64,000 nt of DNA. Source: Bugula neritina. Taxonomy: Eukaryota; Animalia; Bryozoa. The notes beneath the pieces are model-generated. The model worked only from the letters and a program-made list of their open reading frames with translations, did no database searches and was not told the DNA's origin. The position numbers were made by a program, and so were the translations under genes. The stretch covers positions 12,881,801 through 12,945,800 of the forward strand of contig OZ037767.1 in NCBI GenBank assembly GCA_964035545.1, written 5' to 3'. Positions 18,163-58,064 of this stretch are shown piece by piece (position 1 is the stretch's first letter; each line of letters begins with the position of its first letter).

Positions 18163-18329
18163 ATACGAATAGAATGATGCTTGCAACAACCGTTTTACAC
18201 AAGATACATTACAGTTGCTATAAATGTAAAACTTGTTAATTGAATGCAAATAGGCATAGCAATACTACTTAATTTATGCTATTTTTAAAATTTTTAGTAT
18301 ATGTTCGACATGTATATTATATGCATATA

Positions 18330-18625
<296 letters not shown>

Positions 18626-18866
18626 TTAATAACTTTTGAAAAAAGATTTTTGGTTCAATTTGCATATTTAGTTATAGTTTTAAAATTTGTTGGTTGTCAA
18701 TTGCTATCAAAAAAGATTTATAAGCGTTATAATTGTTATCTTTATCTATTTAAAGTAAAGCTTTTTAACAATTTTGTAGTTTTAGCATAGATTATCATAC
18801 TAATACTGCATATCACTTGATCAATATGCATTATAAGCATTTCCAAGGTTGTTAGTGTATTTTTAG

Positions 18867-20073: not shown

Positions 20074-21788
20074 GCAATGCGCCTGTATAGCAGTGTTTAT
20101 TTTTATTACAATATGTAGCCCAGGTTTTGCTTTGAACTGTTATTCCCTGCTTTTATTTATATTTATATTGTTTATAAGACCTCCTTCTTGAAAATAATGG
20201 TCACTATATAATTAAATTACTTTGCTTGATCGTTATGAATCAAAGTTTTCACTTTTATTTTTTTATGGTATTTCCAATATAGTTTTGCACCTTGTTTGGA
20301 AATCAACAAAATCACTTTTCACTAAATTTTGAGCACAACTCAAATAGAAAAAGCTACTTCACTAATCTGATATAGGATGCCATTTTTATATGCTATAACA
20401 CTGGTTTTGGTAGTTTGCATTTTGGTTTGTGTGATTCAGTTATTTAAAATACATTATATTAAAAATAAAAATTTCGATACGGAAATGCATTTATCATGAA
20501 ATAAATATAATAGTATTATTAGAGCCTGCAATATTTGGCTTAAGTTTGTGACAAAACTGTAAGCATCATGCCATAAAAAATGAAATAATTGAAAGAGCTA
20601 AATATTAGTGATATTATAAAATGTTGTGAGCTAAAAGTTATTAAAATTTTTTGATCTAGAAAACAATTTAAATAATAAATGTCATTCTAACTTTATGCTT
20701 TAAAATAAATACAAGATCTTTTTAAGGAGTGCTTGAACATAAATTTTCAAAACCAATGTTGGCCATCTCCAACTGCTATAGTAAACTATACATGTTATAA
20801 AGCATGAAATAGAAAATGAGATAATGCTTGATAGTACAGAAATTGATGTTGTTATGAAGAATTTTTGCTTTCTTTAACGAGCTCAAAATTTATGCTTTCT
20901 CTGATTATTATACGTAAGCTACTTGTTTTTTATATACTTGTATTAGCTTTGCATTTCTAAAAATTTAGAATGGCATTTATGGCACCTATATGAATGCAAA
21001 TTTTTACAATATATTAGTCAAACGAACAAGCTTAAAAGTCCACTGAAAACTAGTAAGAGTATATAGTAACTATAACATAATAACAGTAAAAAGTATGTAT
21101 ACAACATTAACTTTGTAATGCTATAAAATATTTGATATAATATAAATGTAAGGCATGCTTTGAACGAATTTTTGTTATTGGTCTCTTCAAAACAAAAACA
21201 GTGCTCATTTGAAATATTTCTTGATGATTATTTGAAAAAAAAATCACCAATTAAACTCTAAAAATGCAATATCTTTGTTTAATTATTCTATTGAATCAAA
21301 AATAAAAAAAGCTTTTTATTAGCTTATAATCAAACAGAAATAGTTATTGCGTCATTTCAAAATACGTAAGTAAGTTTGATTCATAAACTGAAAGTAGAGT
21401 AACATGTTACCCCACCCAGCATGTAATATGAGTATCATAGCATCCAGTAGGTCAATTATATTGTCTAGAATAAGTGGTTCAGCCTTACCTCATTGATTTC
21501 TATTTGTATAGTTTCTATTTAAGCTCTTACAATTGGAATAATACTCGCTATTGTTAACAATAGATTTATACAATAGTGTCAGTGCATATATAGAGTCAGG
21601 CGTGACCATTTTTGCAATCAACTATAAAGAATAAAACACTGCGATGTTTTTGCAATGTAATAGTTTGCTTACTGTTTGTCAAGCAAGCAAGACATGTAAA
21701 GATACTGGTAGTCAAAGTGTTGCATGAAAATCTGTGAGAGATAATTGTCGAAAAGATTTATCCTCCGTTATAACTCAACTATATTATA

Positions 21789-21924
21789 ATGGAGCAGATA
21801 CTGTTTCTGATCCTTGTACTGGCTGCTACTAGCAATTCAGGTTTGTGTATGTGTAAATCAACATTCTGTACTTTGAATAGTGGCTAAAATATTGAATAAA
21901 GTATATAATATATATATATATAAT

Positions 21925-22018
<94 letters not shown>

Positions 22019-25000
22019 AACTGATAATGTTAGTGTTGATGCTATGATCATGAAGATAGTTCAACTTTTATAAAAGCTAATTTATTTTAGATTGATTATA
22101 CATAATCTTTCAAGTAAATTGTTTGATCACATTTGATGTATGCATATGTACATGTATCTCTACACGTACAAGTACAACTTTGTACATATACATTCTATGC
22201 ATACATTCATGTATGCCCATGTATGCTAACATAAGTACGGGTATGTACCATATATACCTTTACCAAAATTTGAATAACTTAGCAAAGCAGAAAAACAGCC
22301 AATGCAAGTAAGTCTAAACTAAGTTAAAAAAAAGCTTTTACAACTATTTTGAATGAAAACACAGCAATTGTGTTGGTGAAGCAAAAATAAACATCGATTA
22401 TTTGCAGTTTCTAGCCGCCAAAAGTTCTAACATTAGCTTCTTGTTGAATCCAAAGACTAGTAAGTGCTTTTGAAGCAAGGCATTTTAAACCTCTCAGTTG
22501 ATAAATTGTTGTTCAGTTAATGTTTATCTTACAGAGTGGATAGCACAGCATTCTGGACTACCTCCTAGCTCAGAGAAGAAACCAAACACCTTTTCTCTAA
22601 ACATAACCTGGCAGGGCGAGGGTGACTCTGCCCCAAAGACTGTGACTCTCAACCTTCAGAGAAGCGAGGCTATAGAAAGCCGACTGCCAATATATAAACT
22701 AGATAAAGATGGCAAGCCATATCAAGCCTCTCTCTCCCATTTAAAGGTAGAGTAATAGTTATTACCATTTTAATTCCAGTTGAAATTATTTTACAAAAGT
22801 TTGGGTATCAGCACTTTGTTAACAAGTTTGTATGATTCAAAAATTAGCAGCAACTTTAACTTTTCTATATCCTGTTTGTGTTTTTGCTATTAGGTGAACA
22901 TTGCACTGAAGTCATTGTTGTATTCAAGGTCAAACTATATAAGGTGTATTGTCACGGTTGTTGGTTGAATAAACCAAAACTAAACCTTAAGACAAAACGT
23001 GTTTAGTATTCACCTATTGATCTGAATCAAACGATCGAACATACAATAGGTGAAACTCCGGGTGTGGTTAGCAAGTTGATGATTTGTATACTATGAAAGC
23101 ATTGATGACGTATGAAGCTGTGGTTGGGTGTTGCTTTTTATGTGCCATTGCAATTATCTTTGCTCGAAAAGATTTGAACTTTAGGACAAAGCCCAAAATA
23201 AATAGTTATATGTATCTTGACGCAGGCATTATAGAACTGATTAGGCGTGTTTGCTTATCTACAAATAAAAGAAACTTTCTCTTCAAATATTCTGCATGTC
23301 TTAGTGAACATAGCATCTTAGATTACTGGTTAATTTAGCAAATATTACTGGCATTTTAGCATTTCCAATTTCTCAAGCCAGCTCAACTTTTTTTTAGCTT
23401 GATGAATAGGTTAATTTCAGAATCACAAATAAAATATATGAATAAGATAGAATCATTCTACTAACAATGGTTTATTACAGTAGGGGAGTTATTATTGATC
23501 TATAGTTGTTGTTATGGTGGTTTTGATTCATTCAAAACAAACTGTTTTTGTGCGAAAGTAACAAGAAAAACATCTAACATGCAAATACTATGAATTAACT
23601 GGAAATAAAAAAGTATTTTCTTATAAGGGAAAATTTAAATACAGTTTGATTATTTTATGATTAATATGTTATAATGTATACATATTATGTAGTATGTGTA
23701 CATTACATAACTTTTAAGTGCATATTACATAATTTGTATATGTATTATAATATAATATATGCATATTATTAACTTGCATATGTATTTTATAATAGAAAAA
23801 AATATGCTTTCTGTCCCTCTTTTTGCAGTTTGCTGTTACATTTCATACTAGGTCAGAATTAGGATTTTGTTTTTTCATACATATCATATTCTTCTATCTA
23901 GATTCTCGCTTTCTGTAGCCTATATCTGATACATGTAATAGCCGGGTGCAACATTCTTGCATTGTTGCCTTTGCAAAAATATACACATTTAACTATAGAA
24001 ACTAATAACAAATTGAATGATAATAAAAAGCAAATGCTGTAACAGCACATAACAATACTAGAAAGCAGAAGTTTTATAATCTTCCCTTCCTTTAAATTTA
24101 TTTATACCTGGTTATATATGCATAATTTTTGTAAACATAGAAGAACTGACTTCATTCATTTAAATGACATTTGTTAAACAATTAATGCATTTCTAAGGCT
24201 TTGATTTATATTGGGCCAACTAAAATCAAAATTCTGACTTTAATATGCCTATAATATTTTACTCTTACTATATAATATATTAATTATTTTCCTCCTTCTT
24301 TATAATTGTGTAATATATTGTATACATGCATTATGGAACATAATTATTGTAGACATGAGCAGCAAGATAGTTTGCAATTATTACTAATTATATAAAAAAT
24401 TTATAATAATAGAGTGTAACAGAGTTATTTCAGTATTTACGTCTAATAAACAAATAAAAAAAATATGCTTTGACTCACATTCTCTACATAATTATAGTCA
24501 TTAGCTTAATAAACTTAAAAAATCTAGTTATATTGCTTGTAATTCTATACAAAACAGTCTGTTGGATTTTGAGATAGCTGATTTATGTTGTTGCATGTTG
24601 TGCAGTAAGATGTTTGTAGATAGTTATTATTAGGCACCTAATGCAAAAGTTATATAGGCATTGCATTTTTTCTTCAATAATATGAAAGTAGTAAGAAAAT
24701 AGATTATATATATTAGTATATACCAAAGCTTGCAGGTAACAATTGTTCGCCATATAACAAACATAAAATGACAGGAAGTAATGGTTGCGTAAACATTGAA
24801 GTGTATAATTTTATAAAACAACAATTAGGAAAACATAATTTTAATGTCGCCTAGAGAAACCTTTGATAAAAAAGGCTTTTTATAAAGACTAGCTAAGGAC
24901 TTATTCATATATGAAACAGGAGCAATTATAATGAATCACCTTTAGTGAGGTTCGAACTTATGATTTTGTGCTTACTAAGCAAACCCTTTAACTCCTAGAC

Positions 25001-26556
25001 CACAAATGTATATTTCAATATGCTAGGATTAGGTGGGCACACAATTTAATTGAATAAATTGACTCACTTTGGTCTCCAAAATGTAATAAGTTTCCCCCTG
25101 AACATTTGTTTGATTCTATTTTTAGCACTCAACATTTTACAATGATTTAAAAACGATGTCTTCTATTTCTCTTACAAGTTTCACCCAAGAAGATATGAAT
25201 GTGGTGAGTAGTGCAGTATGTGTTAAATGTTAGATTACAAACCATACATTTGATGTAAATGTTTATTTAATGCATCCTTACCCATCTCCACTCTCTATAG
25301 TGGGTAAACATTTATTTCATATTATAGCTAAGTTACGAAAACTTTTTAAAATTAATATTTTTGACTTTTAATTAAAGATATAAAAACTTTCAGTTTGTAA
25401 TCATTTTCTTTATGGTTTATTACTCCACTTGCTCTATCAATCTAACTCTAAGACCTAAGTAATCAACCAAGAATCTTTATAAAAAGCTTTTGAGGGTTAT
25501 GTAGTCAAAGCTTTGAAGCTGCATTCATAAATAATAAAAGAAAATAATTGTTAATATCTTAATGAGTATAAAAAGCTTAGGGCCTACCAGTAACAAAAGG
25601 AGTATCTTATTTCAAAAATATTAGAAAACCATAATCGGTACCACAAAAAAACTTATAATGAAATTAATGAAAGTAAGTTCTCCCTTCATATCTCAAGCAG
25701 TTCCATTTCTCACGAAGCTTCATAAATTTCTAAAAAGGTTTAAACTTCTGTTTTGCGGCTTATGTGTGTGTTTATAGAGGCAAAATGGCCAAATTAGTGA
25801 GTTAACCAGCATTCTGCTATGTCACAAATAGATACCCTAACTTTAGTGAGATATGGAGGGTGTGCTGTATTTTGATATAGATATAATTTGTTGTCTTGAA
25901 ACCTGATGAATGATTTTGCAAAACGTTTAGTATAATATTATGATAGAAATCTGCATATAGTTTCTTATTATTGGCAATAGATTTTTTTTAAAGTTTTGCT
26001 ATATGTACCTAAAAGGGTGTAATATATAATACACTGCATTCATAATATTATCAACTTCATTTATAGCAAATACTTGTTTATATTGTTCAAAACCATTAGA
26101 ATTTTAATGACTGTTCTATTGTTTACAGCACGGCAGTTTCATGTCTGGAGATGATAAGTATGACATTCAGCCGTATCAACCGAGAATACACAAGAGAAGT
26201 ACATCAGCTGGAAAAGGAGATCATATTATAACCAAGAGAGAAGTTAACAAGACGATTGAAAATAATGATTATGTCTGTAAGTAAAAGTACCGAATGAAAA
26301 GAATTAACTTTCTAGGTAGTCAAATTAAATTATTTTTTATTGTTTTTTGTACTTTAGCTGTAAAATGCTCATCAAATTGCCCAAGCAGCTACAGAATTTT
26401 ATCAAAAGTTAAAATTAAAAATTATTGATGGCATTATTGCATTGACTAGTTTCAAAAGAATGTAGATCACTATTGAATAGCGTCTAAAAAATGAAAAGTG
26501 ATATTTGATATGATAAAGTTTTGATTTGGCTAACTTTGCTTGCCTTCAAGTGCAGC

Positions 26557-26628
<72 letters not shown>

Positions 26629-29148
26629 CATATATATAATTTAATGTCATATACAGTACCTCCAGAAGGAAGTTCAGATTATCATACAATACTGGAAGCA
26701 GAGGAAGTATACAAAGAGAAATACCAGTCAAATAAAACCAATGAAAAGAACAGTGTATCTCTTGATGACAACTTGAAGAGAGATAAAAGGCAATCTTTGC
26801 CAGACACAACATATATTATACAGCTTTACATGGTGGTTGACTACTATCTTTCCGAAAAGTGAGTGATCTGTTTGCTAACAAGTTTAGAAGTGCATAAGTT
26901 GAACTTTGAGGATGAAAGAGACACTAAAACTAAAAATAGAAAACCATTCTTAAAGCTAGTGTTTACTTTGTAGGTTGAAAGAATCTAGAATTGAGGTTGG
27001 ATGGAGTGGTGACGATTCAGATTACATACACTTTGTCATGGGACACATGGCCAATGAAGTGAGTACATTATAATATTTTCTCTACACTCTGCTAGTGTAA
27101 CCAACAGGCGTAGATAATTGTTTAGTCTTAAATCATAAATGATTTAACAAATCCAAAAGGTTTTGTCATGTTGGATGTGTGCACAGGGATTTGTGTTGTA
27201 GTAGCTTAAATTGTTTAAACTTCAGGTATTCAAGCAGCTAGATTCATTTATTAAGCTGTGTTTGTGTGACAACAGCTAAGACTAAAATGTAATAGATAGC
27301 CTTAACTTTATAATCTCATGAACATATGATCAGTTTATCTATTGATCGACATTTTTTCAGCATCTATTCTCAAACATTCTCTAAACAATAGCTAAGATGT
27401 ATGCGAATATTTTAATACTGCATAAACGAACTTTATCAAAGATTCTTTAATATAAACTTTATAAAATCTAGATATCTTATAGGCTCTGATTTTTGTTTAT
27501 TTGTGTCATATATAATAACAAAAACACATAACTATATAAAAATGGAAATGCACATTTATCTTCTATGCAAAATACTGATGCTAGTAAAATAATTCATAAA
27601 CTACGTTATAATTTCAGATTGATGTTCGGTATAGAAACATAGACTCCAGTGTCAGTCCCGTGAGTGCTACTTGGACTATCGGAACAAAGCTATCATACTT
27701 GACAATTGCAGAAGTAAGTTTTTGTGCATAATTAATTGTTTTAATAGCATGTTGTTAGTTGCTGCATATATTATATAGGTCACACTATTCAGTAGCAGTA
27801 AATAAATCTATTGCTGTAGCAGCAATTTTTAAAAAAAATTAAAGTGCTAACTTTTTTTGTTCAAAACCTAATTTGCGCTTTTGGATTGAGGATTCCTCAC
27901 TCGCCTGAGTAACTGTAAGCCCAACTCAAAAAACCATTATGCAACATTAAGGTGTAAATAGTTGAGTGACCATCGCAGTATGTTTTATAAGGACCAAAAC
28001 CAACTTTGTTACTAAATGTACTGAATACTGGGGTACTACGCAACCAGAGATGCCAAACAAATGACTTAAACTATTAGCTTTAGTAAAACCAATGGCAACC
28101 ATCTGGCGTGTAATGCTATCATACAGATGAATGGCTGCTTTAGCTAACTTAATGTTAAATTTATTACATGAACACCGTAAATAGTTTTTTCATAGACATA
28201 TTTTTACAGATTTTCCTTCAATGTTATATATATAATAGTGTGTTCTATTGTTTGTGTAGCCATACCAAACTAGTAAACAAAGTGATAGGACTAGCATAAT
28301 TATATGTTGTAAAGTAAATTTGCACACTTATTATAGTTACTGTAATTTTGTTTAGATTGCTGGGTTGCAAACAGTGAAAATTACATAATAACATACTGTA
28401 TAGTAAATAGATATTTTTGTTGTAATTGTTTTGACAATTACAGACAAGTCTGGAATCTTCATGGACTTTTCCGAGCAGTTCTGGGCTTTTAGACTCTTCT
28501 ACAGGATTGAACTCATTTACTGTTTGGATTGGTGACAATGATGACACTCTGCCTTCTGATGCTGACCACTATATGCTCGTTACCAGGTGGGCTATGTTAA
28601 CTTTCACTGTGCACCTGCTTTTTTTTAAAAAATGATTGGTTTGGTAAGAAGTAGTGATAATATTTAACAGACATAATAAAGTTTTATTGAATGTTGACCT
28701 GCTTTATTTTTATGTTTTAAAGCAGATAAACATTTACAAAGTATTTGTTATAGCCTTGATCTGACATCAGCTGGTTCATCTAGTAATGCAGGTCTAGCAT
28801 TTGTGGGAGGAGTTTGTGGCAATAATCCTTCTTCAATCAATGAGTTTGGTGATACGACTGTTCTGGCTCACGAACTCGGACACAAGTAAGGTCAAAGCTA
28901 GACCAAAGTTGAATTTTGCATGAGCTGATAACTGATAAAAAATGTTCCAACTGTTATGCTGTTATGTAGCAAATTAGAACGAGTAAGAGCAATTCTTTTT
29001 AAATAGTCATTTTAAGATTAAGCCGTTGGAGTAGATGAAGCATTATATTTTTTCTTCCTAACAATTACATACCTACATACATGCATATATATATCCAAGC
29101 TGAAAATAGAAATATATATATATATATACATATATATAACACACACGC

Positions 29149-29213
<65 letters not shown>

Positions 29214-29243
29214 CGTACGCACGCACGCACACACGCACGCACG

Positions 29244-29278
<35 letters not shown>

Positions 29279-29925
29279 CTTTACGAGCTAGCAATTTGAT
29301 TATAAATAAGTATACGAGAAACATTGTTGATTTATTATTTTATTAGGTAAAGTAATTATACTGATATTTCGAGTACCAATGTACCCATCTTCGGAGTAGC
29401 AATGAATGGAATTCAAAAATTTATCAACACATCTCCACTACTAATAATGGAAACATGTCAATAGACAATGTAACAGTTTTAAATCATTCATTTAAAGGAA
29501 TCCACCATCGAAAAGTAGCCGAAGCTCTCTACATTAAACAAATAAAACCGCAACTCAATAAAAAAAATTACTCCATACCACTAAAACTATATCAATAGCT
29601 CCACACTACTCAACTCTCACATAGTTTCACTAATTCTTGCTGTTTTTATATTTGGATATCTATTTTTTTTGTCAACTCTAATTTATTTTTTATGCAAAAT
29701 AAATCAGTATAATTTTTGACCTGCGTAATATATAAAATAAGATTATCTCTAAGTTTCAATGGTTTACAATAACTGCCACTCTTTATTCTTTGTGTCATGC
29801 ATAACGTCTAACGTAGAATGAAGATCTAAGTTTATTTTTATATCCAAAATTGTATTAGTACCAAATATAAATACTCTATTTTTCGAAATATTGAGTTCTT
29901 TTGATTCATTTTTAATTATAGAAAC

Positions 29926-29956
<31 letters not shown>

Positions 29957-32900
29957 GTATATATATTTCTATTTTTAGCTTGGATGCAGCTCACGATGGA
30001 ACAGGAAATACCTGCTCGGCTAATGATCAGTTTATTATGGCACCTTCGAGTTCTCTTACTGGTGCGGCTACTAGAGGCAATCCTTGGAAATTTTCGATAT
30101 GTTCTGCAGAGAAATTTGATGCCTTTCTCACGACACTCAACAAGTATGTAAATGTGTAAAGTAATAGATTGCTGTTAGCTACTGCATGTGATTATTTTGT
30201 TATCTATACAAAACTCATGTTGCTTTATAGTTATTACTCCTTGAGAGAACCACTGTTGGAAGGGGTCTTTTTAGCTACAGAATAGCTTCTATATTGAGCA
30301 ATTATAGAACAATTATGACTGAATGCATTTCTTTACTTCACCAATGACGACTGACAGTATTTGAACCACTGACCATGTGTATACTATGCTAGTGCTCTAA
30401 CTGGTAGGCTGATCCTTCTCCTTGCACTTTTTTGTATGATTTTATATGTATAAAATTCAAGCTTGCATTTCTGTTTTAGTGGTGGTAACAACTGCTTAAG
30501 TAATGATGGCTCATACATAGCATCATGGAGTGAGCACTACACTGGATATATAGGTCAAACTATCCCAGTAGATGAACAGTGCAGGCTAACCTTTGGCGAT
30601 AACTACTATTATTCTGTAAGTCTGATCGTTTGTATCCAGCTACAAAAGTAGTTAGCATTTTATAGAGCAGTTTTTTCTATCAAAAAAATCCTTTGGTTCA
30701 AATGCAAAAATTGCATCAGAATATGTAAATTTTGTGAAATTAATAATTTTTATTGTGTGCATAATTATGTAAACGCAACTGTTTTTAAGTTTATGATTTC
30801 GAACACTATAAAATATCCTTAACTTGTTATATTGAGGTGTATTTTGCTATTAAACAGCTTAAAACAAATAATTAGCAAGTTGATGAAACAGTTTCAATAC
30901 TTTGACCAACAAATAATGTCAATTTAATTATGAAGGTTATATTATTTTTAATTCAATTTATATGAAGAATTATATAATTCTTTGTATGCTTCTTACAAAT
31001 AACATAATTAGAGTTTTACAGATGATGCATACTGAAAACTTACGTTTAGAAAATTGTTTTTAGACATCTTTTTTTTCTGACGTTTGCCATGCATTGTGGT
31101 GCACAGAAGACGGTTTAAGTTCTACTGCAAAAAGAGCCGCCCTTTCCTATACCACATGTGGAAATATGAAGGTAAAGCAATCAAAAGGGCATTGTGCATT
31201 TGGAAAGGGAAGAGTTGATCTAACCTGAAAAAAATCAAAATAATTGTTGAGATTTGGGGTAAATAAAATACGCTGGGGGGGGGAGGGGGATGAGGAATTT
31301 TTTTTAATAATATGATTTTAAGAGTGTGATAAAATAGTTGTAATTTTTACCCAAATTTACAGTCACCATCCCTGTCCAAAGCCACTGGTGAAACAAATTT
31401 TTGAAGGGAGCTAGAACTTATTCAAAGGTTGGCACAGGAGCAATTTTGACTGGATGCTCTCCCTAACCTTATCAATGGCCTTCACTGGGGTTAGAACCCA
31501 TGACTTTGTGTTTACTAAACTAGTGTTTCAACATTAGGCCACCGCTGTTATATAAAATAATTGTTCTTCTGTGCTGTAAAAAAAATATTTTTAGTCACAA
31601 AATAGTAATTCACAACCACTAACTTGATTATTTAACAAAGCAGAACGTGAAAGTTTTTAACAAATATGTCTGATCAAACCTTTTACAGTGGTGTGTTGAA
31701 GAGGAGTGTGTGGAAGATCCTAATGCTCCAGCACTAGATGGTAGGTAAAATGTTTCATTTCAAAACATATGTATTTTGTGAAAGTTGAAGATTATGTACT
31801 GTTGAGTTCAAGTTTTTATTTGATAGCTGAAATTATGAGGCAAAATATATTTTGTATATCGAAATATAAGTTAAATATAACCAATGCATTTAAAATATTG
31901 GTTGATAGAGGTCTTGGTGAAAATATTGAAAATAAATAAGAAAAGTATGAATACACCTTGTCAGTTGGGTAAACCGAGGGTACACCAGTCCCCAAATAAT
32001 GACTGCTATTGATTTAGTAGCTAGCTGATAAAAAGTCTATTACTTTAGAAACTATGCATTCTCTTGTGAAATAATTGATTTCCTTGTAGAAAATTGTCCA
32101 CTTGGGGATCAACCAGGTCAAATATTCACAAACTCAGATATGACATGTGCAACAGCAGAAGCTATAGACTGCGCTAGGTCATCTACTGTAGTGTCAAAAT
32201 GTTGTGCAACTTGTCCTTCACATGAGAAACCATGGCTGGGACCAGATTGTCCGTATGGAGATAAACACCCTATTTGTCCTCAACTGAATGACGCTAGCTG
32301 TGCTGTAAATGGTGCCATCTGTTGTGACAGCTGCTGTGATGTGAATGGACCAGCAGAAGGATACAGCTGTGATCCTACATCAACTACTACTACAACAACA
32401 ACAACCACTACAACACCTACTACCACCACAACACCAACTACTACCACAACACCAACTACCACTACAACACCAACTACCACCACAACACCAACTACTACTA
32501 CAACACCAACAACTACTACAACACCAACTACCACCACAACACCAACTACCACCACAACACCAACTACTACTACAACACCAACTACCACCACAACACCAGC
32601 TACCACTACAACACCAACTACCACCACAACACCAACTACCACCACAACACCAACTACTACTACAACACCAACTACCACCACAACACCAACTACTACCACA
32701 ACACCAACTACCACCACAACACCAACTACCACCACAACACCAACTACTACTACAACACCAACTACCACTACAACACCAACTACCACCACAACACCAACTA
32801 CCACCACAACACCAACTACTACTACAACACCAACTACCACCACAACACCAACTACCACTACAACACCAACTACCACCACAACACCAACTACCACCACAAC

Positions 32901-35900
32901 ACCAACTACTACTACAACACCAACTACCACTACAACACCAACTACCACTACAACACCAACAACCACCACAACACCAACTACCACTACAACACCAACGACC
33001 ACTACAACACCAACTACCACTACAACACCAACTACCACTACAACACCAACTACCACTACAACACCAACAACCACCACAACACCAACTACGACCACAACAC
33101 CAACTACCACTACAACACCAACGACCACTACAACACCAACTACCACCACAACACCAACTACCACCACAACACCAACAACCACTACAACACCAACAACTAC
33201 TACAACGCCAACTACCACCACAACGCCAACTACCACCACAACACCAACTACCACCACAACACCAACTACCACTACAACACCAACTACCACTACAACATCA
33301 ACTACCACTACAACACCAACTACCACTACAACACCAACAACCACCACAACACCAACTACGACCACAACACCAACTACCACTACAACACCAACGACCACTA
33401 CAACACCAACTACCACTACAACACCAACTACCACTACAACACCAACTACCACTACAACACCAACAACCACCACAACACCAACTACCACTACAACAACAAC
33501 GACCACCACAACACCAACTACCACTACAACACCAACTACCACTACAACACCAACTACCACTACAACACCAACAACCACCACAACACCAACTACCACCACA
33601 ACACCAACTACCACCACAACACCAACTACCACTACAACACCAACTACCACTACAACACCAACTACTACTACAACACCAACGACCACTACAACACCAACTA
33701 CCACCACAACACCAACTACCACCACAACACCAACTACCACCACAACACCAACAACCACCACAATACCAACTACCACTACAACACCAACTACCACCACAAC
33801 ACCAACTACCACCACAACACCAACTACCACTACAACACCAACAACCACCACAACACCAACTACGACCACAACACCAACTACCACTACAACACCAACGACC
33901 ACTACAACACCAACTACCACCACAACACCAACTACCACTACAACACTAACTACCACTACAACACCAACTACCACCACAACACCAACTACCACTACAACAC
34001 CAACTACCACCACAACACCAACTACCACTACAACACCAACTACCACTACAACATCAACTACCACTACAACACCAACTACCACTACAACACCAACAACTAC
34101 AACAACACCAACAACTACTACAACACCAACTACTACTACAACACCAACTACCACTACAACACCAACTACGACCACAACACCAACTACCACCACAACACCA
34201 ACAACCACCACAACACCAACTACCACCACAACACCAACTACCACTACAACACCAACTACCACCACAACACCAACTACCACTACAACACCAACTACCACCA
34301 CAACACCAACTACCACTACAACACCAACTACCACTACAACACCCACTACCACCACAACTACAGCTGTTTCAACTCCTAGACCAAGGAGAAAACGTTTTCG
34401 AAATAGACGTTTTTGGCTTCGACTTCGCATTAGAAGATTGATCAGACAAAACTTTGTCTGCTCTGATCCAGATTTTGCAGACAGAAGTTCTCTCACCTAC
34501 CAGCAGTTTGAAGTAAGTCATCTTTACCATTTTAATATATCGCTATAAACATCTGCAAAGCTTATTATTAGAAGTTGCCTAAAGATAGTTGGCTAGATCT
34601 AACTTCAACTAGATTGCTGAAAACAAATGAAAGTTTATTGCTACTAGTATAAAGCCGCACAAAGCAGTAATACTGAGCATTTTCAGCGTGACATGTTGCA
34701 CTTGGTAAACAAAAGTAAGCCAAATTCACAATTGATTCATAAAGCTTACTTGATGGTACGCTATCCATGGTATCTTTCAGCATATTAGTATACAAAGAAT
34801 CTTTTAAGCATGCAAATGCAAGAGTCTCACACTAAGTCAAGCCTAACCTTATGTGCATCCTATACTTTTGTATGATTACTGTGGATTATGAACTTCTTTT
34901 AGTCTATAGCACGTTTTTGAACCAAATACTTTGATATCACTCTAAGCAGTAAAATCGTAGGAATTACAAAACCCTATGTTAATGAAACTTAGCTGATTTG
35001 ATCAATGATCTCACTGTCACATACCCACGCACGTACGCACTCATCGTCAATGTTTAGTTTCAATTAAATTTTGGTTTATTACTATGCATCAAAAATTTTC
35101 GCAAAATATAGTTTTCCTGCATGCAAATCCTTTCTCATGACGTAAAAAATGTTGCATTAAGCAACTGCAGTAATGACCAACAATGCAACGTTATAAGTAA
35201 AGAAACTATTGTACACATGAAAATCTGGCAATCAATAAGAGTTTAATATTTATTTTATAGCCATACATGTAAACGAAATTGTTTATTTATTAGGTATTTC
35301 AGTAACAACTAGTGCTGTAAAAATGTGTATTGACTTATATTTTCAGACTTGGTATTTTTTTCTTACTTGTTGCATTCGCTTTATATTTTAAGCTTCATAG
35401 TTTCAATAAGCTAGGTTCACCTTTGAAAATAAAACTGGTATGTAGATTTCATTTTCTTCTGCACTTCGTAACTATATTTTTTACAAACTTGTTTTTTCTT
35501 TGTATGCAGAACCAGCTATGTGAAATCATCAACAATTATGTTCGGAATGTCAGATCCTGTGGACCATTCATAATATCTTGTGGCAGTATTATTGCTGAAA
35601 GTACTGTTGAAGTAGTTGAGAGAGATGATGATGACCCAGCCAATGCTGCTGCTGCCAATCAGTCACAGTTTACTCAACAAATTTCTTCCATTCTCAATGA
35701 TTCGGCATTAGGTAGTTAACTGCAACTTATACTGCTTTCATGGCAATCACTTTCAAAAATTTTTTACTACTGTGTTCGTTAACAATTTCGTAAAACTAAA
35801 AAAAAATTATCTGGTTAAAAACGTTTTCCCATAGCTTGACAGGTAGATCAAATCAAATTCTTTCTGTTTATGTATGTCTAGAAATATCAAGTCATCGACA

Positions 35901-38900
35901 TTATAAGCATTTTTCTTACAGTTGTTGCTGAAGCACCGGTAGTGTTAGATGTGAACGAATGTGAAGATTCAAATCTGAATGACTGTAGTCCTAATGCCAA
36001 CTGCACCAACACAGATGGGTATTATACTTGCACTTGTAATGAAGGTGAGAAATCTCTGTACATGATTTAAATGACTATACACACGAAGATTAGTCAAAAT
36101 TTATATATATTATTTTATGTCAAATTGACTTCAAAAAGTACCCTTTTTTATTCATTTATTTTATATTATTGGTTATATACACTTATCGCTATCGTCAACA
36201 ATGTATATTTCAGATTATCCAGTTGATATGTCCGAGTTTAGTGATGAATTGGGAAGAATTTGTGCCAAGTCATGTGACGGAGTTAGTTGTGATGTAAATG
36301 AAGTCTGTGTGACCCAAGCAGAAGCAGACCCTGTGTGCGTGTCACAAGGTTAGGATCTGTTTTACTTTCTGAGTTTATAACTGAAGCTGTATTTTATACC
36401 CACCTACAGCAATTACTACATAAAGTTTCTATATAGAGCATTTGGTTTCTAATGTTTATTGAGAAATTGTTCTGCATATTTCGGTGTACTGCTTATAAAT
36501 TATGTTACACTTTAGTACTATTAACTTGCAGTGCCTTGAGGCTTCTATAGTAGGCTAACTATTTCTAGGTGACCTAATTTAGCCTTTATCATATGCTATA
36601 TAATATATATTAGATTAACAATTGTTTTATGACTAGCTGAATTGTTCTTTTTACAATCTACTATTGCGTTGCATAGACTTAATTATGAATCTATTATTGC
36701 CATTTCCTGATACTACTGACTAACATTATTTGCACATGTGAGTCATTTATTTTTGGTTTTCGCTCAAAACTTCCGTTTCTGAACATTCTGTTTTTTCCAT
36801 TACACACCAAAACAAGCTAAAATTGCAATTAGTCATCATCACCACATCTATGTTATTTTGGGGCTGTCACAAAGCAGCAGGTTTGTGGTCTGTTTAGTTT
36901 TAATTTCTCCATTAGTACATTTAGTACTATATTCACATGAGTACTTAAGCTGGGCAAACGCTATCTTTTGCAAATTTTTAAAAATTGTGATTTCAGGCTA
37001 AGCAATTTGCTAGACATCAAAGTAGCTTGTAACTCCTAATTCAACAAAATATACACTTATGTAAAACAAAAATCTTTTGTATAGCATTACAATTGGGTTT
37101 TGCATTAAGAATGAGAATTTCCTTATCGCACACATTGCTTAAACTGAAATTGCCATTTTCATAATAGATGCTACAACTATTATAAGACATAAACAGAAAA
37201 TACTGTCATTGTCAAAGTTTGTTTTTTGTATTACCTAGTCTAAACAAATTTGTAGGCTATATATCTATAATATTTTCCTAATATAAAAAAAAAAATTTGC
37301 ATGTTAGGATTTGGGGACTGTTCGACTATTAAATTTTTGATTTTATAAGTAGGAACTTAATGATGTATTTCAATTTTATACAACTTTTTTGACTTTGTAT
37401 TGTAATTTTTAGCAACTACTACAGAGGCTGCTGTAACTAACTCTGAATCAAGTGAATCAACAATTCTTGGCTTAAAAACAAAGACATTCCAACTGGAGCT
37501 GACAATTGACAAGTTTATTTCATACAACTTTGACTGTGCCGATCCAGATTTACAGAATACTCAAAGCGCCAAATACTTAGAGCTTGAAGTAAGGGGAGAT
37601 GATTTTGTTAACAGGCTTGACAAAAATACCTTTTCTACAATCAAATGGTTGAAAGGGAACGGTTTTTTAAATTTAATTTAATTAAATGCAAAAACTTAAT
37701 AAGTTTGATTTTTAATGAAATATTATTTCAAATTGTTTTGTGTAGAACAACAAACTTGGCTCTACGATACGATAAAAATGATTACTTACTCATTTTCATG
37801 CTATAACCTATATTAAGTTTTAGTGATAAAAGTTATAGCAGTTTTAATTCTACTTCTGCAGCAAATAACTTGCACAGCAATAGGCAGACACGTCAACAAA
37901 GTACAGAGCTGTGACAGCCTCACAGTATCCTGTGGCAGCATCAAAATCAGCACTGTAGTACAGGTCTTAGAGAATATCTTAGACTCTGCTGCCGATGCTG
38001 CCCCTTCATCTACTGCAGAGTTCATTCAACAGATTGCTGGAATACTTAAAGATCTTGAACTTGGTTAGTTTTATACCAGTAGGCTATATAGCTTTATAGT
38101 ATTCAAAAATTTAGAACTTGGTTAGTGTTATGACAATATATACTCAGCAGTTTTTAATCCAAAACTTTTATGTGGAACAAAACAAATTTAACTAAACAAA
38201 TTAAAAATTAATTTTATTGTTTTAAAGTTTTTAGCAGATTAATAATCGAATTTGTACATAACCAAACCATTTTATGCAGTTTTAGTCATTGTGTACAATA
38301 ACTTTGTTTATTGTAGTTGTTACTGTGCAACCATCAGTATCAGATGTTAATGAATGTGAGAACTCAGAACTGAATGACTGTAGTCCTAATGCTGAGTGTA
38401 CCAACACAGATGGATATTATACTTGCCAGTGTAATGATGGTGGGTTCATCATATATCTGTTGAATCTATAGGATCTGAATCACATCTTCAAAGTTTAAAC
38501 AGATTCCTTTTCAGTTACATCAAATAGAACCACATACTTCTTTTACTTTATATATACAAATCGACAGAGTTTTATTACCAGATGTTACCAAGTCAAGAAA
38601 ATAGTTTTTAAAAACTCTCATCTTTCACAATTTATAGCAATAAAACCTCCAAAACAATCATTTGTACTTATCGCATATTAATATCATATCTACTGTAGAT
38701 GACTAATGTACATGTATTATTAACCATTTGTTTCTCCCTTGTTTTAGGCTACTCAGCAGATCTTTCAGAGTTCTTAGATTTGGGAGGTAGAATTTGCGCT
38801 CAATCATGTGATCGTTTTGCTTGTCCAACAACTCAAGTTTGTAAGGAAGTAGCTGAAGATGAGCCAAACTGTGTATGTGAGGGTAAGTAAATCATCTGAC

Positions 38901-39690
38901 TTTTCAATTCCATCACTGGTCAAAATTGCTTTCAACAGAATACATTGCATATGCCTTTCTCTCTCCATCAGCCATAGCAAATGTTTATGGAGTGTTAATA
39001 ATACCCAGTGGCCCCTGTGGTGTGATGATTAGCAAAGGTACTGTTGGCCAGAAATCTTGGGTTTGAATCCCAGTAGGGGTAAAAGTTGTATAAGCTATTT
39101 CGGAATTTAGTGAAAGAGTTGAGAGCCAAGTAAGCCTGAAAACTAATGGAATAATAGATTAAGGCCAGATATATTTTTGAGAACTAGAGGATGTAGTCTC
39201 GGATCACCCAGTCCCTCTTTAGTGAAATGCTTAGCTCGTCTGTTTGCAAGCCGAAGGTTTTAAGTTTGAATCCCAGACGGGACAAAAATTTTATCTTTTG
39301 TATTCTAAGAAAAATATTATTATGACACATTAGCATTCATACACCTCAACACACACTTATGAGCATATACTTGGAAAATTCATTGTAATTCTCCAACTTC
39401 ATAATATCAAAATAATGGTAAACATAACATAATATTACTTGTGTTTTCTAGGGTTCTGCCATCACTGGGTGTATGTGGTAATTGGAGTAACAACACTGCT
39501 AGTAGTTGCAACAATTGTCATTATGACCTGCGTGTGTGTTGCAAAAAAGTCCAAGCTCAAAGAAAAAGTCACTCCACAGCCACCTTATGGAAAATTTAAC
39601 CCAACTTCATTTATGAATCCTCAACTTACTGGTAAAAAAGTTCATCAACCTCTAACCTACGCCATCGATGAACAGAGAAATAATTATTGA
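21789..39690 (+). CDS. Type I membrane protein: reprolysin (M12B, ADAMTS-like) metalloprotease - Cys-rich - 2x PLAC-like - PTS mucin - 2x(SEA-EGF_Ca-EGF-like) - TM (gene A, ~1788 aa)
   Basis: 22 phase-consistent GT-AG exons: 21789-21840, 22535-22746, 25126-25203, 26129-26276, 26657-26858, 26974-27058, 27618-27713, 28444-28586, 28754-28885, 29979-30143, 30480-30615, 31064-31171, 31689-31740, 32090-34512, 35510-35711, 35922-36044, 36214-36348, 37413-37588, 37862-38063, 38317-38439, 38748-38882, 39452-39690 (5367 nt). Signal peptide MEQILFLILVLAATSNS; furin site RDKR; GLAFVGGVC; HELGHNLDAAHD; Met-turn FIMAP; GQTIPVDEQCRLTFG; SEA motifs CGSII/CGSIK; DVNEC EGF; TM WVYVVIGVTTLLVVATIVIMTCVCV. Confidence 0.88.
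24913..25005 (-). mobile_element. tRNA-derived SINE fragment
   Basis: Minus strand has A-box-like TGGTCTAGGAG and B-box AAGTTCGAACC; shares CAGGAGCAATT with copies near 30300, 31430 and 50270. Confidence 0.55.
26561..26629. repeat. (CA)n microsatellite
   Basis: Direct observation; just upstream of the exon 5 acceptor. Confidence 0.95.
28754..30143 (+). CDS. Zinc-binding exons of the M12B catalytic domain (28754-28885 and 29979-30143)
   Basis: AHELGH|NLDAAHDG...CSANDQFIMAP...WKFSICS across a phase-2 intron. Confidence 0.9.
29139..29280. repeat. Compound (GCAC)n/(CA)n/(TA)n microsatellite
   Basis: Direct observation. Confidence 0.95.
29359..29598 (+). mobile_element. 5'-truncated Penelope-like element remnant (GIY-YIG C-terminus) with an inverted hammerhead-like motif at its 5' junction
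   Basis: ~29413-29598 translates SKIYQHI...VTVLNHSFKGIHHRKVAEALYIKQIKPQLNKKNYSIPLKLYQ*, the EAxxIxxxxPxLN tail of PLE endonucleases; minus-strand HHR-like fold at 29359-29398. Confidence 0.7.
31431..31548 (-). mobile_element. tRNA-derived SINE
   Basis: Minus strand CAGCGGTGGCCTAATGTTG (A box) ... GGGTTCTAACCC (B box) followed by the family body; same family as 50270-50390. Confidence 0.6.
32090..34512 (+). CDS. Large exon: two PLAC-like Cys modules, (PTTTTT)n mucin domain, polybasic site, start of SEA domain
   Basis: 802-aa ORF in the track; acceptor at 32089 and donor at 34513 in phase with the flanking exons. Confidence 0.9.
32380..34360 (+). repeat. Coding 18-bp tandem repeat (~108 units, PTTTTT)
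   Basis: ACACCAACTACCACTACA-type units; variation mostly at synonymous third positions. Confidence 0.95.
39008..39290 (+). mobile_element. Two tandem tRNA-like heads (SINE or tRNA pseudogenes)
   Basis: GCCCCTGTGGTGTGATG...GGGTTTGAATCCCAGTAGGGG (39011-39079) and GTCCC...AAGTTTGAATCCCAGACGGGAC (39211-39283), each with acceptor-like stem and B box. Confidence 0.5.
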
Positions 39691-41038
39691 CATTTGAATA
39701 CCCAAAAAAACAATATCATTAACTCCACTTTATAGTTGGTAATTTATTGCACAGAAAACTGGTTTTGATACTCACACAAACATGCATACACATATGCACA
39801 TGTGCTTATAGTTGTATATATTTTTTTATGTATAAAACTGCCTTTCTTGCTAATCAAAATTTTTCTCATAAATAGTGATATTTTTTCATATTAAAAAAAC
39901 AGAATTATTTTGAGACATCTTATACTTTTACACGTGAATGCAATTGCGGTTCTGTCTGTTCTTCAGATCACTCATATTACAAACTTGTGTGGTTTATTAT
40001 AACACATTTTATTTTACTGCTAACTGATGCTACAAACTGCTGTAATTGCATGGAACCTAATTACATTCTTTTTTAGTAGAATTAGCAATGTTAAACAATA
40101 AAATTTTAAATTTCTCATCAAGTTGTAGCATTAACTAGGGTATGGGAAGAACTTATAGTAGCTATTTTTATGTGAAAGATGCACACATGAAGGAGGATTT
40201 GAGTAGTTTTAAGCATAAAAAAAACATATTTGCATAGCATACTTTTTAAACAACATGACTGCATTAATTTCTAGCTTTTTGAGTGCTGGCGCTGATAATG
40301 TACGAGAATACTTTGTATCTAACATGTTTTAACATTTCCAGTTTGTTTCATATAATAAAAAACAAAAACATGTATGCTACCATTTATTTTGTATTTCATT
40401 CATTAACTGCAAATGTAAAATGACATATTTTATAAATCTGGATTTTATTTCTAGATAGAAAGCAGTATCCACGCAAATGGAGACTATCTTGTCCCATAAA
40501 CTTCATAGTTAAGGTAACAAAGCCTGTTGACCCAGTGGTTTAATTTCTTTTTGTATCCATAGTTTATTTGTTGCCACAAATATTCAAGGAGTGTTTCAAA
40601 TAAACCTAATATATTTATTATCAAGAAACGAAGCAGAACCGGCTGTGAAACTATAAGATAGATTTTGAATTATTGAGCAAAACATTTCATAAAAGTCCTA
40701 AAAATTAAGCAGAATATAAGAGACTATCATAAGCAGCATACAAACAGCATAAATGGAATCACAAAATAAACAATTTATAATTTATAAAAAATAAAAACTT
40801 ATTTGAGAAGTTGCCAAATTTCAATGCAAAACTTAAAAAGAAAAATATAAAACATCAGAATGCATATGCAGCATAAAGCTAGATAATGATCATTAGATTT
40901 TCAGCTCACCCTCAAAAATCGCTGGAAGCAGCACCAAGTTGGCGGTAACTGGGTGCATTAGTTCAAAGTCTCCAGTTTATTGTTGGAGGCTTGGAGTTTG
41001 GAAAATATTGCCTACACAAGTTTTGCACTCAGTCACCC

Positions 41039-44000
41039 TCAACTCGGTGCTGCTTCTAGCAATATTCTTTGCTCTCTGTGTTTAAGCAACAGCTGGACTA
41101 ACTTTTTTCTTTTTGGAACAGCAGCAGACAGCAATCACAGATATTATGATTATCAGAACCACTACACTTCCAGCACCAATTAGTATGTAGACCCAGGTAG
41201 GTTGTCCTCCACATTTACCTACAATTAATTTATACAGATATTATCTATACATGTAATTTGTCTGCAGGTGCTATATACTTGTGCTATATATACAAATACA
41301 ATATGCAGAAAATGAATGCAACGATGTGCTTTTAACATCTGCTTAATTGAAGCAATAACTTTGCTGTGAACAGAAAGCTGATAACAGACCAAAGCTGCTG
41401 CCAATATTTTGAAATTATTGATTCATGAAATTTGCAAATGCAAAACTCAGTCATGTACATTTAAGGCATGCACTCAATGTAATGTACAACTACAATAAAC
41501 AATACATTTGACCTTGACCTACATGCCTTTACTATGAGTTGAAAGACACTGACCTGAGGTACACTGGCAAACAGGTTCTGATTCAGCCTTTTCTACACAG
41601 ACCTCACCTGCTGAGCAGGAGTTGTCAGAACAGAGCTTGGCACACACCCTACCCAACTCATCTGAGTACTCCGAAAGGTCATGGGAATATTCTAGAACAG
41701 AAAGCAAACGTTACTGTAGAAAGATTGTTACCAGTCACTGTGTTTTTGGCCCTGTGGTTTACATAAAATTGTGGTTGTGGTTTCATTCTATTCAGCAGTT
41801 TTTTAACCTCGACTGAAATTTGGGTAGTAACTATATAAAATGTTGACAATTAGACAAAAAGGTGTGTTAATCAGAAGTACAGCATTCACTTTCACCGGCT
41901 TTCGGTCTCAGATCAATTTCGGCGAGATCGATCCATTTAAAGACGTCAAAAATCAATCTCAGTCAATCTGGGCTGGTCGGTCTGTAAGGGTTGTGTCCCC
42001 ATGTACATATGCATGTGAAGAGTTGTGTTATCATGATGTAGCGAAAGGGCAGCTCTCTTAGTAGAACCTGTTATCCTAATGCGTAGCGTTCATCATCTAC
42101 TCAGCCTGCTAGTATCTGCCTACTACTCTATTAACATACGCTATGGACAATGGGAAGAGCTTAATAATTAGAACTAGTTTAATCCAGTTGATAGCTATCG
42201 TGCTTGGGTAGCCAGCAGTTAGGCAGTGGATTAGTTATAGCTAAATTGTGTATGCTCTTTCTGCAATTATGTAACGTATTTTTGTTGTGTTGTGTAGTTT
42301 ACTTTTTTATCTTGTGAATTAAATAAACGCTCTATAATCTACATCAACTTGGCAGTGTTGCATTACTTTTAATACTCAGCAATTAGTGAATGCACAGTTT
42401 CACAACAGTGATGGCAGTGGTGGGATTAATTTAATACAATTTAAATTAATTTTAAATTTCCTAGCCAAGGAGTAGGAAAAGGTAGCAGACGAAGAGGATG
42501 CGCCCGTCAATAGCGAGTCGAACCAGCAGCTATGGAGGATGACATAGGCGGCCCAGCGCTGCCTATGAGCAGGTACAACTTGCGGGCTCCCGTCTTTTTA
42601 GGTGGAGAGGATGTGGAGCAATTTATCACTGAGTTCAGTAATGTGGCAAGGCCCAAACCTAACCGGGTAAGGAAGCTGCCTTCGCCAGAGTGGCAAGCCC
42701 CACGGAGAGTTAGCAGACCGCAAGGTCCGTCAAAATCTTCGGCTTGGCTACTCACAAACCGCTTTGAAGGGTTGCCTGATGAGGGAGCATACGAAGAGTA
42801 GGAGCAGGACCGAGATTTCCTTTGGTTACACACGCGAGAGCAGTGCTGAAGTTTTACTCAGCCGCTCGTGTGGGAGCAGCACCGAGATGTAACTCGGCTG
42901 CCCACTAAACGTCGCCAATCCCATCGCAGTCAGAAAGCGCAGGTGCATCCCCAACTCCATGCACATGAGGTGTCACCTTCAGAGATGAACCGCTCAGTGA
43001 GCGCCCAGCTATATGGAAGCAGTCATTTCCTGCCGGAGAAACTTGCCGGCAAAGCTGCAACATTCCTGTTGGATACCGGGTGTACCACAAATCTCCTGCG
43101 CTGGTGTCTTTTCGACACACTCAGTGCCAGGGACCGGGCGAACCTGGAGCCATATAAAGGGGAATACAGCATGTTGGCTGACAAGTCGTGTATTTCCTTC
43201 TATAGAGTGATAGAGTTGATTGGTAGAATCCGTGATCAGGTGATCAGCGAGAACTTCCTCGTCAGTCAACTCAAGGAGGATGCCATTTTGGGAATGCCAT
43301 TCCTCAATCCACACAAGTGTCACATCGACTTTACCAAGTAGGCGGTGGTGATGGCTGGGTGTGAGCTTGCTTGTGTAGATCGGTGGTGGGGGAGTGGAGG
43401 TGGCATGGCACTGTACTGTACCTGGGCCCTCCCTGGCTACAGTTTGCTGCAGAATGAACTGTAGTGATATATCCGACTTAGGAGTGGTGGAAGGGGCACT
43501 GGGGGCGTCCAGCTCGCTAACAGTCTGAATAGGCCGGATGAGCGGGGGAAGTTTCTGGTACAGTATGTGAACCCTTTCACGTTGTCGGCTGATTTGCTAG
43601 TAGGGAAGTTTCACTCCAAACAGGAGGAAGATGTTGGGCCTGCCCTGGAGACGATGAAGGAGGCTCGGAGAGTACCCACTAGGCACGTCAGGGGGCCAAT
43701 GCCTGAACACTTGGTAGATTTGTACGGGGAAGCCTGAGATGGCTGTGAGAGCAAGCAAGAACGGCTAGTCGTGGCGCAGCTACTCCCTGAATACAAGGAT
43801 GTGTTCATTTGCGGCGTTCATGATATGGGCCTTGCCAAGACTGTCTGTCATGAAACACCCCTGGCGGTTGGAAAGGCGCCTATTAGGCAGCCTACTTGCC
43901 GGATAGGTCCTGAAAAGTAAAAGGAAGTGAGCCGACAGGTGCAAGACCTTCTAAACCAAAACCTGATTGAGTAAGCCCATGGTGCTTGGAGCTGTCTAGT

Positions 44001-57698: not shown

Positions 57699-58064
57699 CT
57701 GCAACAGAAATACTGTATGATGCGGATGCTTCTTTGTAGATACCATACAAGAAATGTACAATTTAATAAATAGATTATCACTGAAAAATAATTGCCCTCA
57801 CTGGGATTCAAACTCGGGACTACTGAGTAATCACAACACTACATCCCACCGGTGTCATCCCAGATAGACAATTTCCAGTTAGACGCTATTTATTTATTTC
57901 AGTACAATATATATTTTGTTTGCAATTCTTTTGAATACTTTTAAAATATATGTATATTTAAATGAACTTAGATTAGTTGTTTATTACTTAGCACATAAAA
58001 AGATTTATTTGCGCTGTATTAACTTATTAATTTTGCATTTTCTATACTTCTTGTTGTTTGAAAA

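Follow-up and report, generated by a model that had tools for sequence, protein, structure and literature searches.

Does a single gene of the bryozoan Bugula neritina place a metalloprotease at the tip of a transmembrane mucin? The question is raised by a 64,000-nucleotide stretch of its 216-Mb genome (contig 3, OZ037767.1, positions 12,881,801-12,945,800; hereafter the window), in which an initial annotation had drawn a 22-exon, stop-free and phase-consistent reading frame running from an M12B protease head through a Thr/Pro stalk and two cassettes of small domains to a membrane helix. Our answer is that it probably does. We favor one gene for a type I membrane glycoprotein, belonging to a bryozoan-type expansion of MIG-17-like ADAMTS-type metalloproteases that lack thrombospondin repeats (TSRs) and have gained a mucin stalk together with a membrane anchor. 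Rebuilt from the sequence, the chain occupies 21789-39690 on the plus strand, with a coding sequence of 5358 nt, a product of 1785 amino acids (aa), a sole stop at 39688-39690, GT...AG boundaries at every intron, mutually consistent phases and no internal stop. The model draws on stop-free plus-strand segments, inspection of splice sites and mapping of the exons onto P0014 (XP_067943399.1), an uncharacterized RefSeq protein of the bryozoan Watersipora subatra; exon 3 was located through a 26-residue gap left by that mapping. Profile searches, family scans and fold predictions were run exon by exon, and the joined translation was used for frame, length, hydropathy and motif coordinates. The exons and the evidence for each are as follows (P0045 is another uncharacterized Watersipora protein; E, expectation value).

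21789-21840, plus strand: exon 1, start codon and 17-residue signal peptide; ATG in good context, hydrophobic core and donor GT, paralleling the P0014 N-terminus
22535-22746, plus strand: exon 2, pro-domain; 36% identity to P0014 22-91 and P0045 20-89
25126-25203, plus strand: exon 3, pro-domain, 26 aa; matched by P0014 80-125 as tblastn query (E 8e-6); AG and GT at its borders, phase 0 on either side
26129-26276, plus strand: exon 4, pro-domain; 41-46% identity to P0014 and P0045
26657-26858, plus strand: exon 5, end of pro-domain, furin-type RDKR (26779-26790) and start of catalytic domain; aligned to P0045 167-223
26974-27058, plus strand: exon 6, catalytic domain; 50% identity to P0045 227-254, contiguous with adjoining exons
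27618-27713, plus strand: exon 7, catalytic domain; 66% identity to P0045 255-286, 100% identical in a paralog on contig 6
28444-28586, plus strand: exon 8, catalytic domain; mapped in order onto P0014
28754-28885, plus strand: exon 9, catalytic domain with HELGH at its end (28869-28883); Pfam Reprolysin_3 at 21.1 bits, plus Reprolysin_2/5/4; 65% identity to P0045
29979-30143, plus strand: exon 10, remainder of zinc site (N-LDAAHD) and Met-turn IMAP (30034-30045); weak Pfam Reprolysin_2/Reprolysin
30480-30615, plus strand: exon 11, start of ADAMTS-type disintegrin-like domain; Pfam ADAMTS_CR_2 profile positions 2-24, 18.8 bits
31064-31171, plus strand: exon 12, middle of this domain; Pfam ADAMTS_CR_2 profile positions 27-62, 23 bits
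31689-31740, plus strand: exon 13, end of this domain (WCVEEECV); 82% identity to P0045 517-533
32090-34512, plus strand: exon 14 (2423 nt), single open frame with phase-1 acceptor, made up of the next four parts
32092-32382, plus strand: two PLAC-like six-cysteine modules
~32377-34360, plus strand: Pro/Thr/Ser-rich (PTS) mucin
34378-34395, plus strand: RPRRKR
~34411-34512, plus strand: first half of SEA-like module 1
35510-35711, plus strand: exon 15, second half of SEA-like module 1, with SCG-S at 35576-35596; alignment and fold model
35922-36044, plus strand: exon 16, calcium-binding EGF 1; Pfam EGF_CA 30.9 bits (cut-off 27), EGF_3 29.6 bits
36223-36348, plus strand: exon 17, last cysteine of EGF 1 and a small cysteine module; no Pfam family for the module
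37413-37588, plus strand: exon 18, short T/S linker and first half of SEA-like module 2; alignment, 36% identity to the end of exon 14
37862-38063, plus strand: exon 19, second half of SEA-like module 2, with SCG-S at 37928-37948; 41% identity to exon 15, equal length (202 nt) and phases
38317-38439, plus strand: exon 20, calcium-binding EGF 2; Pfam EGF_3 30.6 bits, EGF_CA 30.4 bits
38748-38882, plus strand: exon 21, last cysteine of EGF 2 and a six-cysteine module; weak TILa match, 16.2 bits
39452-39690, plus strand: exon 22, membrane helix (39469-39540), 49-residue basic/proline-rich tail and stop; hydropathy

That a single gene encodes the protease head, the mucin and the membrane anchor seems very probable to us. 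Nearly all introns interrupt domains, and the exons are therefore tied together: the catalytic domain is divided among exons 5-10, the disintegrin-like domain among exons 11-13, and each SEA-like module and each calcium-binding EGF domain (EGF_CA) between two exons. The one junction without a split domain, that of exons 13 and 14, is contiguous in P0014, where exons 2-14 map without a gap to residues 22-661. Exon 14, entered through a phase-1 acceptor, supplies neither a start codon nor a signal peptide; its one frame encodes the protease’s ancillary domain, the entire mucin and the first half of SEA-like module 1. Relative to paralogs, the ratio of non-synonymous to synonymous divergence (dN/dS) is 0.11-0.18 in the head, 0.27-0.30 in the tail and 0.32-0.53 in the cysteine-rich part, values that place both halves under purifying selection. 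Split domains, paralogs and a second species thus bear out the initial annotation of one gene with a protease head on a mucin/EGF/transmembrane scaffold.

In that second species, P0014 and P0045 are homologous to the Bugula gene exon by exon, with 29-82% identity. P0014 ends in a short T-rich stretch followed by a membrane helix and, unlike the Bugula product, has no SEA-like/EGF cassettes. At the DNA level, the P0045 locus (L020) runs from protease exons into a single 464-codon open exon, comprising the cysteine-rich domain, 314 aa of S/T/P and a SEA-like start, and continues with a SEA-like second half, an EGF_CA domain, a cysteine module and a membrane-helix exon. Where the Bugula gene has PTTTTT units and two cassettes, this locus has an (ST)n stalk, 314 aa long, and a single cassette, and the P0045 protein model is cut at the repeat. 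An antisense frame of the same repeat is annotated as a gene (L020:33438-34433). The NCBI name of one Watersipora family member is ‘mig-17-like’.

Within the Bugula genome, the cysteine-rich exon of the exon 14 type occurs in at least 14 copies, at least 10 of which are preceded on the same strand, at a distance of 2-4 kb, by protease exons. At least three paralogs preserve the complete collinear exon order: one at 10.90-10.93 Mb of contig 3 (two cassettes and a transmembrane helix), one at 11.34-11.36 Mb of contig 3 and a minus-strand neighbor in the window. Every copy that we compared combines the cysteine-rich domain, the PTS block, a basic patch and the start of the SEA-like module in one exon. 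Length and repeat type of the PTS block differ in every copy (PTTTTT, PSTPSTQ-type, ST runs or non-repetitive), as a mucin spacer would be expected to. In two comparisons, with the copy at 10.9 Mb of contig 3 and with window positions 51414-51695 on the minus strand, synonymous divergence (dS) is 0.23-0.25 in the cysteine-rich part versus 1.2-1.9 in the protease head (exons 5-13), which suggests gene conversion or exon exchange among family members. Tandem expansion, hypervariable stalks and apparent copy exchange are in keeping with a fast-evolving surface or secretory system.

What kind of protease heads this protein? A signal peptide in exon 1 leads into a pro-domain (exons 2-5) that ends in RDKR at residues 205-208. 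In the catalytic domain of exons 5-10, HELGH closes exon 9, N-LDAAHD opens exon 10 and the Met-turn IMAP follows 13 residues past the third His. The zinc motif reads HELGHNLDAAHD; its Glu, three His and Asp are kept, and Asp (codon GAT, 29983-29985) occupies the metzincin Gly position. Across the family this position holds Gly, Ala, Asp or Asn, with the other active-site residues invariant: Asp or Asn in the nearest paralogs (Asn in the copy at 10.9 Mb of contig 3), Gly in more distant ones and Ala in P0045. Pfam matches to Reprolysin_2/3/5 are weak on the exon pieces with HELGH and the Met-turn, and exon-collinear homologs match Reprolysin and Reprolysin_5 at 1e-9 to 3e-13. ADAMTS_CR_2 extends across exons 11-13; the pieces score 18.8 and 23 bits (a rough sum, set against a whole-domain cut-off of 27.3), the third exon adds the closing WC..E.CV, and the homologs match at 6.5e-17 (P0045) and 3.7e-13 (P0014). 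The initial annotation had described the head as free of TSP1 repeats and of an ADAM disintegrin domain, and both absences held up in our motif and Pfam scans: TSP1 signatures of the CSxTCGxG and WxxW types were found in no plus frame of 21000-40500, TSP_1 or spacer matched no exon, and neither Disintegrin (PF00200) nor the ADAM cysteine-rich domain matched any exon at E up to 1-10. By its sequence, we assign the head to ADAMTS-type M12B proteases without TSRs, in the MIG-17 layout. We judge it probably active, because no liganding or catalytic residue has been lost and no other part of the protein is under stronger constraint.

Directly behind the disintegrin-like domain, the first 97 residues of exon 14 form two tandem six-cysteine modules with the PLAC-like spacing CxxGD...C...C...CCxxC. 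Their fold is predicted with a mean local confidence score (pLDDT) of 92, and no solved structure matched this piece. The Pfam PLAC model matches one of 18 family members (E 0.01), weak support for PLAC identity, and in a genome-wide scan it had no match at 21789-39690. In the ESM Atlas, residues 49-86 fall by shape on PLAC-bearing ADAMTSL4 clusters, with a root-mean-square deviation of 3.0 over 37-38 residues and a template-modeling score of only ~0.3. Among 1.84 billion protein representatives the 97-residue domain has 25 relatives, and the annotated ones, from Watersipora, Patella, Nucella and Helobdella, place it right after Reprolysin and ADAMTS_CR_2 (a Paralvinella relative has no catalytic part). 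Because it sits directly behind these two domains in other animals, the cysteine-rich domain is best regarded as the protease’s own ancillary domain.

The stalk and membrane anchor proposed in the initial annotation were also recovered. The PTS block is 662 aa long, contains 552 T and 104 P (99% T+P) in PTTTTT units, and corresponds in the DNA to an 18-bp unit repeated 110.1 times with 92% match (32377-34358; Tandem Repeats Finder). The long open reading frames in other frames of this repeat (32280-34496 on the minus strand, poly-Val/Gly; 32345-33949 on the plus strand, poly-Gln/Leu/Pro) are by-products of the array. A single hydrophobic helix, at residues ~1713-1736, contains the only 19-residue windows of the product with mean hydropathy >1.8. 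Between stalk and helix, the initial annotation had placed two SEA-EGF-EGF cassettes, a description that stands in part. Two cassettes are present, each a SEA-like module, a calcium-binding EGF and a cysteine module, with exon sizes of 202/123/126-135 nt and identical phases, and EGF_CA exceeds the Pfam cut-off in both (30.9 and 30.4 bits versus 27). The supposed second EGF, however, is a four- to six-cysteine module outside the Pfam families (TILa at 16 bits only), and SEA was detected by none of the sequence methods. The Pfam scan of exon halves gave no SEA match, an ESM Atlas feature search with exon 19 was blank, and the model of the second half had no Foldseek match at E ≤0.001. This half (exon 15) is predicted as helix, strand, a hairpin with a conserved Gly-Ser, strand and helix (pLDDT 81); prediction of the two halves as a two-chain complex scored 0.05, which is uninformative either way. 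The modeled half is weakly compatible with a SEA fold, and we call the module SEA-like.

Two features at the foot of the stalk indicate that the protease head may be releasable instead of held. RX[KR]R motifs cluster at residues 1300-1310 (RPRRKR), exactly between the stalk and SEA-like module 1, and offer a furin-type site; the Gly-Ser motif of the SEA-like modules is a second candidate for cleavage, by a different route. A basic patch is present at the stalk foot in every paralog, and Gly-Ser is retained in six of eight SEA-like second halves. A strict furin consensus is found in this copy only, with KKR, SKR or none in the paralogs; tethered and shed forms may therefore differ among paralogs.

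How might such a protein work? By its module order this is a type I membrane protein in which the protease is the module most distant from the membrane. We propose that a proprotein convertase would remove the pro-domain at RDKR. The Thr/Pro block would be densely O-glycosylated and stiff, and at ~0.25 nm per residue could reach roughly 150 nm, which would keep the enzyme at the periphery of the cell coat in the way that fractalkine presents its chemokine. Release of the head could then follow, with RPRRKR or the Gly-Ser conserved in the SEA-like modules as the point of cleavage. The protein would most likely serve in proteolysis at the apical surface or on the cuticle side; defense, antifouling and digestion are guesses.

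Several points weigh against this account, and rival readings build on some of them. Replacement of the Gly of HExxHxxGxxH by Asp could weaken or alter catalysis. Run across the whole genome, the Pfam SEA model matched canonical SEA exons elsewhere and none at the locus, and profile searches of the PDB with the two SEA-like alignments, module halves searched separately, were blank. O-glycosylation, stalk extension, surface location and release are all steps that we infer. A sequencing-run index queried with the locus matched one DNA-like run and no RNA run, so splicing and expression are predictions. The Watersipora annotation presents the orthologous locus as separate genes. These last two points would suit two transcription units. 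One would encode a secreted MIG-17-like protease that stops with exon 13 or shortly behind it, the other a membrane mucin that begins in exon 14, and their shared frame would be a by-product of tandem duplication of a two-gene block. Retention of intron 13 would also lead to a stop after three codons, making a short secreted isoform possible. Nevertheless, we consider two units highly unlikely: no signal peptide follows the first in-frame Met of exon 14 (32140), the acceptor of this exon is in phase 1, and the 97 residues at its start belong to the protease as an ancillary domain in other animals and adjoin the disintegrin-like domain without a break in P0014. Moreover, the Watersipora split falls on the repeat and the antisense false gene, and because one annotated ‘gene’ is that antisense frame, we read the split from the sequence as an annotation artefact. 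More improbable still is that the Bugula gene itself is an assembly artefact or a decaying pseudogene. Long 18-bp arrays are prone to mis-assembly, and the 3′ end of a paralog stands orphaned a short way upstream (18869-20027), but 5358 nt in 22 exons contain no premature stop, the splice sites are canonical, the sequence is under purifying selection, and the layout recurs in paralogs and in another species.

Other rivals accept the one-gene model and concern what becomes of its head. Cleavage of a single precursor, by a convertase at RPRRKR or by self-cleavage at the SEA-like Gly-Ser, could send the protease-mucin into mucus or cuticle and leave a SEA-like/EGF/transmembrane stub on the cell. 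The position of the RX[KR]R cluster, the basic patch in all paralogs and the retention of Gly-Ser agree with such shedding; confinement of the strict furin consensus to this copy, overlap of the basic residues with the first strand of the SEA-like module and the putative status of both SEA fold and self-cleavage speak against it, and we regard a shed enzyme as rather unlikely, if the strongest of the rivals. We give a distinctly smaller chance to a pseudo-protease that serves for binding after loss of the invariant metzincin glycine. Asp, Asn or Ala does replace Gly within the subclade, but no change affects the Glu, the three His, the Asp that follows the last of them or the Met-turn, dN/dS is lowest in the head, and Asp and Asn tolerate backbone angles usually adopted by Gly.

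If a tethered, MIG-17-like protease on a mucin stalk is accepted as the probable product, is its design new? MIG-17 of Caenorhabditis elegans is a TSR-less ADAMTS-family protease with signal, pro-domain, metalloprotease, disintegrin-like and PLAC modules, the same module order, without a thrombospondin repeat, as in the head here (PMC4856095). MIG-17 is secreted and ends at PLAC, whereas two PLAC-like modules are followed here by mucin, SEA-like/EGF cassettes and a membrane helix. ADAMTS proteases are secreted and have no EGF, transmembrane or cytoplasmic modules, and only ADAMTS7 and ADAMTS12 among them carry a mucin/proteoglycan insert (PMC4448532). The Bugula protein shares the M12B catalytic domain and the ADAMTS-type disintegrin-like domain with canonical ADAMTSs, including ADAMTS7/12, and the mucin feature with these two, but differs from the canonical layout in its two EGF_CA domains, transmembrane helix and tail and in the lack of any TSP1 match. 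ADAMs resemble it as type I membrane reprolysins with an EGF domain next to the membrane; its ancillary domain, in contrast, is of the ADAMTS type, with no Disintegrin/ADAM_CR match. We know of no ADAM with a long PTS stalk.

The scaffold has close parallels of its own. SEA-type transmembrane mucins (MUC1, MUC3, MUC12, MUC13 and MUC17) share a hypervariable PTS repeat, a juxtamembrane Gly-Ser module, EGF domains, one transmembrane helix and a short tail with the Bugula protein, although their order is EGF-SEA-EGF and here the SEA-like module precedes the EGF. To our knowledge, none of these mucins bears an enzyme at the tip. Enteropeptidase and matriptase, type II serine proteases with SEA domains, combine a protease with SEA at the membrane, a pairing that may also occur here, but their catalytic class differs and their membrane topology is opposite. 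Fractalkine (CX3CL1) carries a functional head, a chemokine, on a mucin stalk (PMC11311528); the design principle is common to both proteins and the head differs.

The initial annotation had recognized the architecture in no named family. For the layout as a whole this agrees with our searches: in a length-free search of representatives, none of the 25 proteins sharing the cysteine-rich domain was longer than 1110 aa or had the full layout, and in the literature that we searched we found no description of a natural membrane-tethered ADAMTS. A length-windowed homolog search for P0014 covered 415-1321 aa, a range below the ~1800 aa of a full-length homolog. The head, by contrast, has precedent in MIG-17 and in Watersipora P0014, the nearest public record. 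We therefore see the novelty, as far as sequence can tell, in the mounting of a TSR-less, MIG-17-like ADAMTS head on a transmembrane-mucin scaffold; the component parts are known, and we would not call it a new kind of system.

More broadly, the prevailing view of transmembrane mucins is of passive barriers and sensors. A family that is conserved and multi-copy and sets an ADAMTS-type head on a transmembrane-mucin scaffold would unite the concepts of secreted ADAMTS and membrane mucin, and would serve as a natural model for the positioning of enzymes within or above the glycocalyx. Tentatively, and with somewhat less than even confidence, we go further and suggest that bryozoans possess membrane-tethered, ADAMTS-type ‘enzymatic mucins’, in which a hypervariable O-glycan rod would lift an active zinc protease ~150 nm off the membrane and a convertase cut, or force-sensitive separation of a SEA-like module, could free it. 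These could form a multigene surface system for coat remodeling, defense or antifouling that has no equivalent in the ADAMTS, ADAM and mucin families described so far. Because annotation pipelines cut such genes at the mucin repeat, as in Watersipora, public protein sets probably underestimate how common this class of architecture is.

Other members of the family lie in and beyond the window. One occupies 41085-57700 on the minus strand, tail to tail with the main gene, and extends past the window end into contig 3, 12945801-12955800; its zinc motif keeps the canonical Gly. Its features are as follows.

41240-41085, minus strand: transmembrane exon
~41561, minus strand: cysteine module
~49408, minus strand: EGF_CA
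49953-50150, minus strand: SEA-like second half
50937-51713, minus strand: exon with cysteine-rich domain, PTS block (~140 aa, non-repetitive) and SEA-like start
~57194 and ~57591, minus strand: disintegrin-like exons; the catalytic exons lie beyond the window

Just upstream of the main gene, at 18869-20027 on the plus strand, an orphan 3′ remnant of another paralog consists of an EGF_CA exon, a cysteine module and a transmembrane exon, with no matching 5′ exons detected within 30 kb upstream. On contig 6 (10,680,001-10,700,000), a close paralog combines a complete protease head with an 864-codon open exon containing a long PTTTTT array; this exon ends without a SEA-like start, no tail exons were found in the next 11 kb, and the copy may represent a secreted or truncated form. 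On contig 2 (24,017,711-24,018,304), one open frame encodes the cysteine-rich domain twice in tandem, with no protease exon detected nearby.

Repetitive DNA is also conspicuous in the window. Long (TA)n, (CA)n and compound microsatellites fill intronic or intergenic positions at 18260-18790, 21924-22070, 26560-26640 and 29080-29290. Four GC-rich (~0.5) blocks with reverse-transcriptase- and integrase-like open reading frames, at 11081-17023, 42868-46734, 53463-56641 and 59582-63968, appear by eye to be retrotransposon copies, and two of them lie inside introns of the minus-strand paralog.

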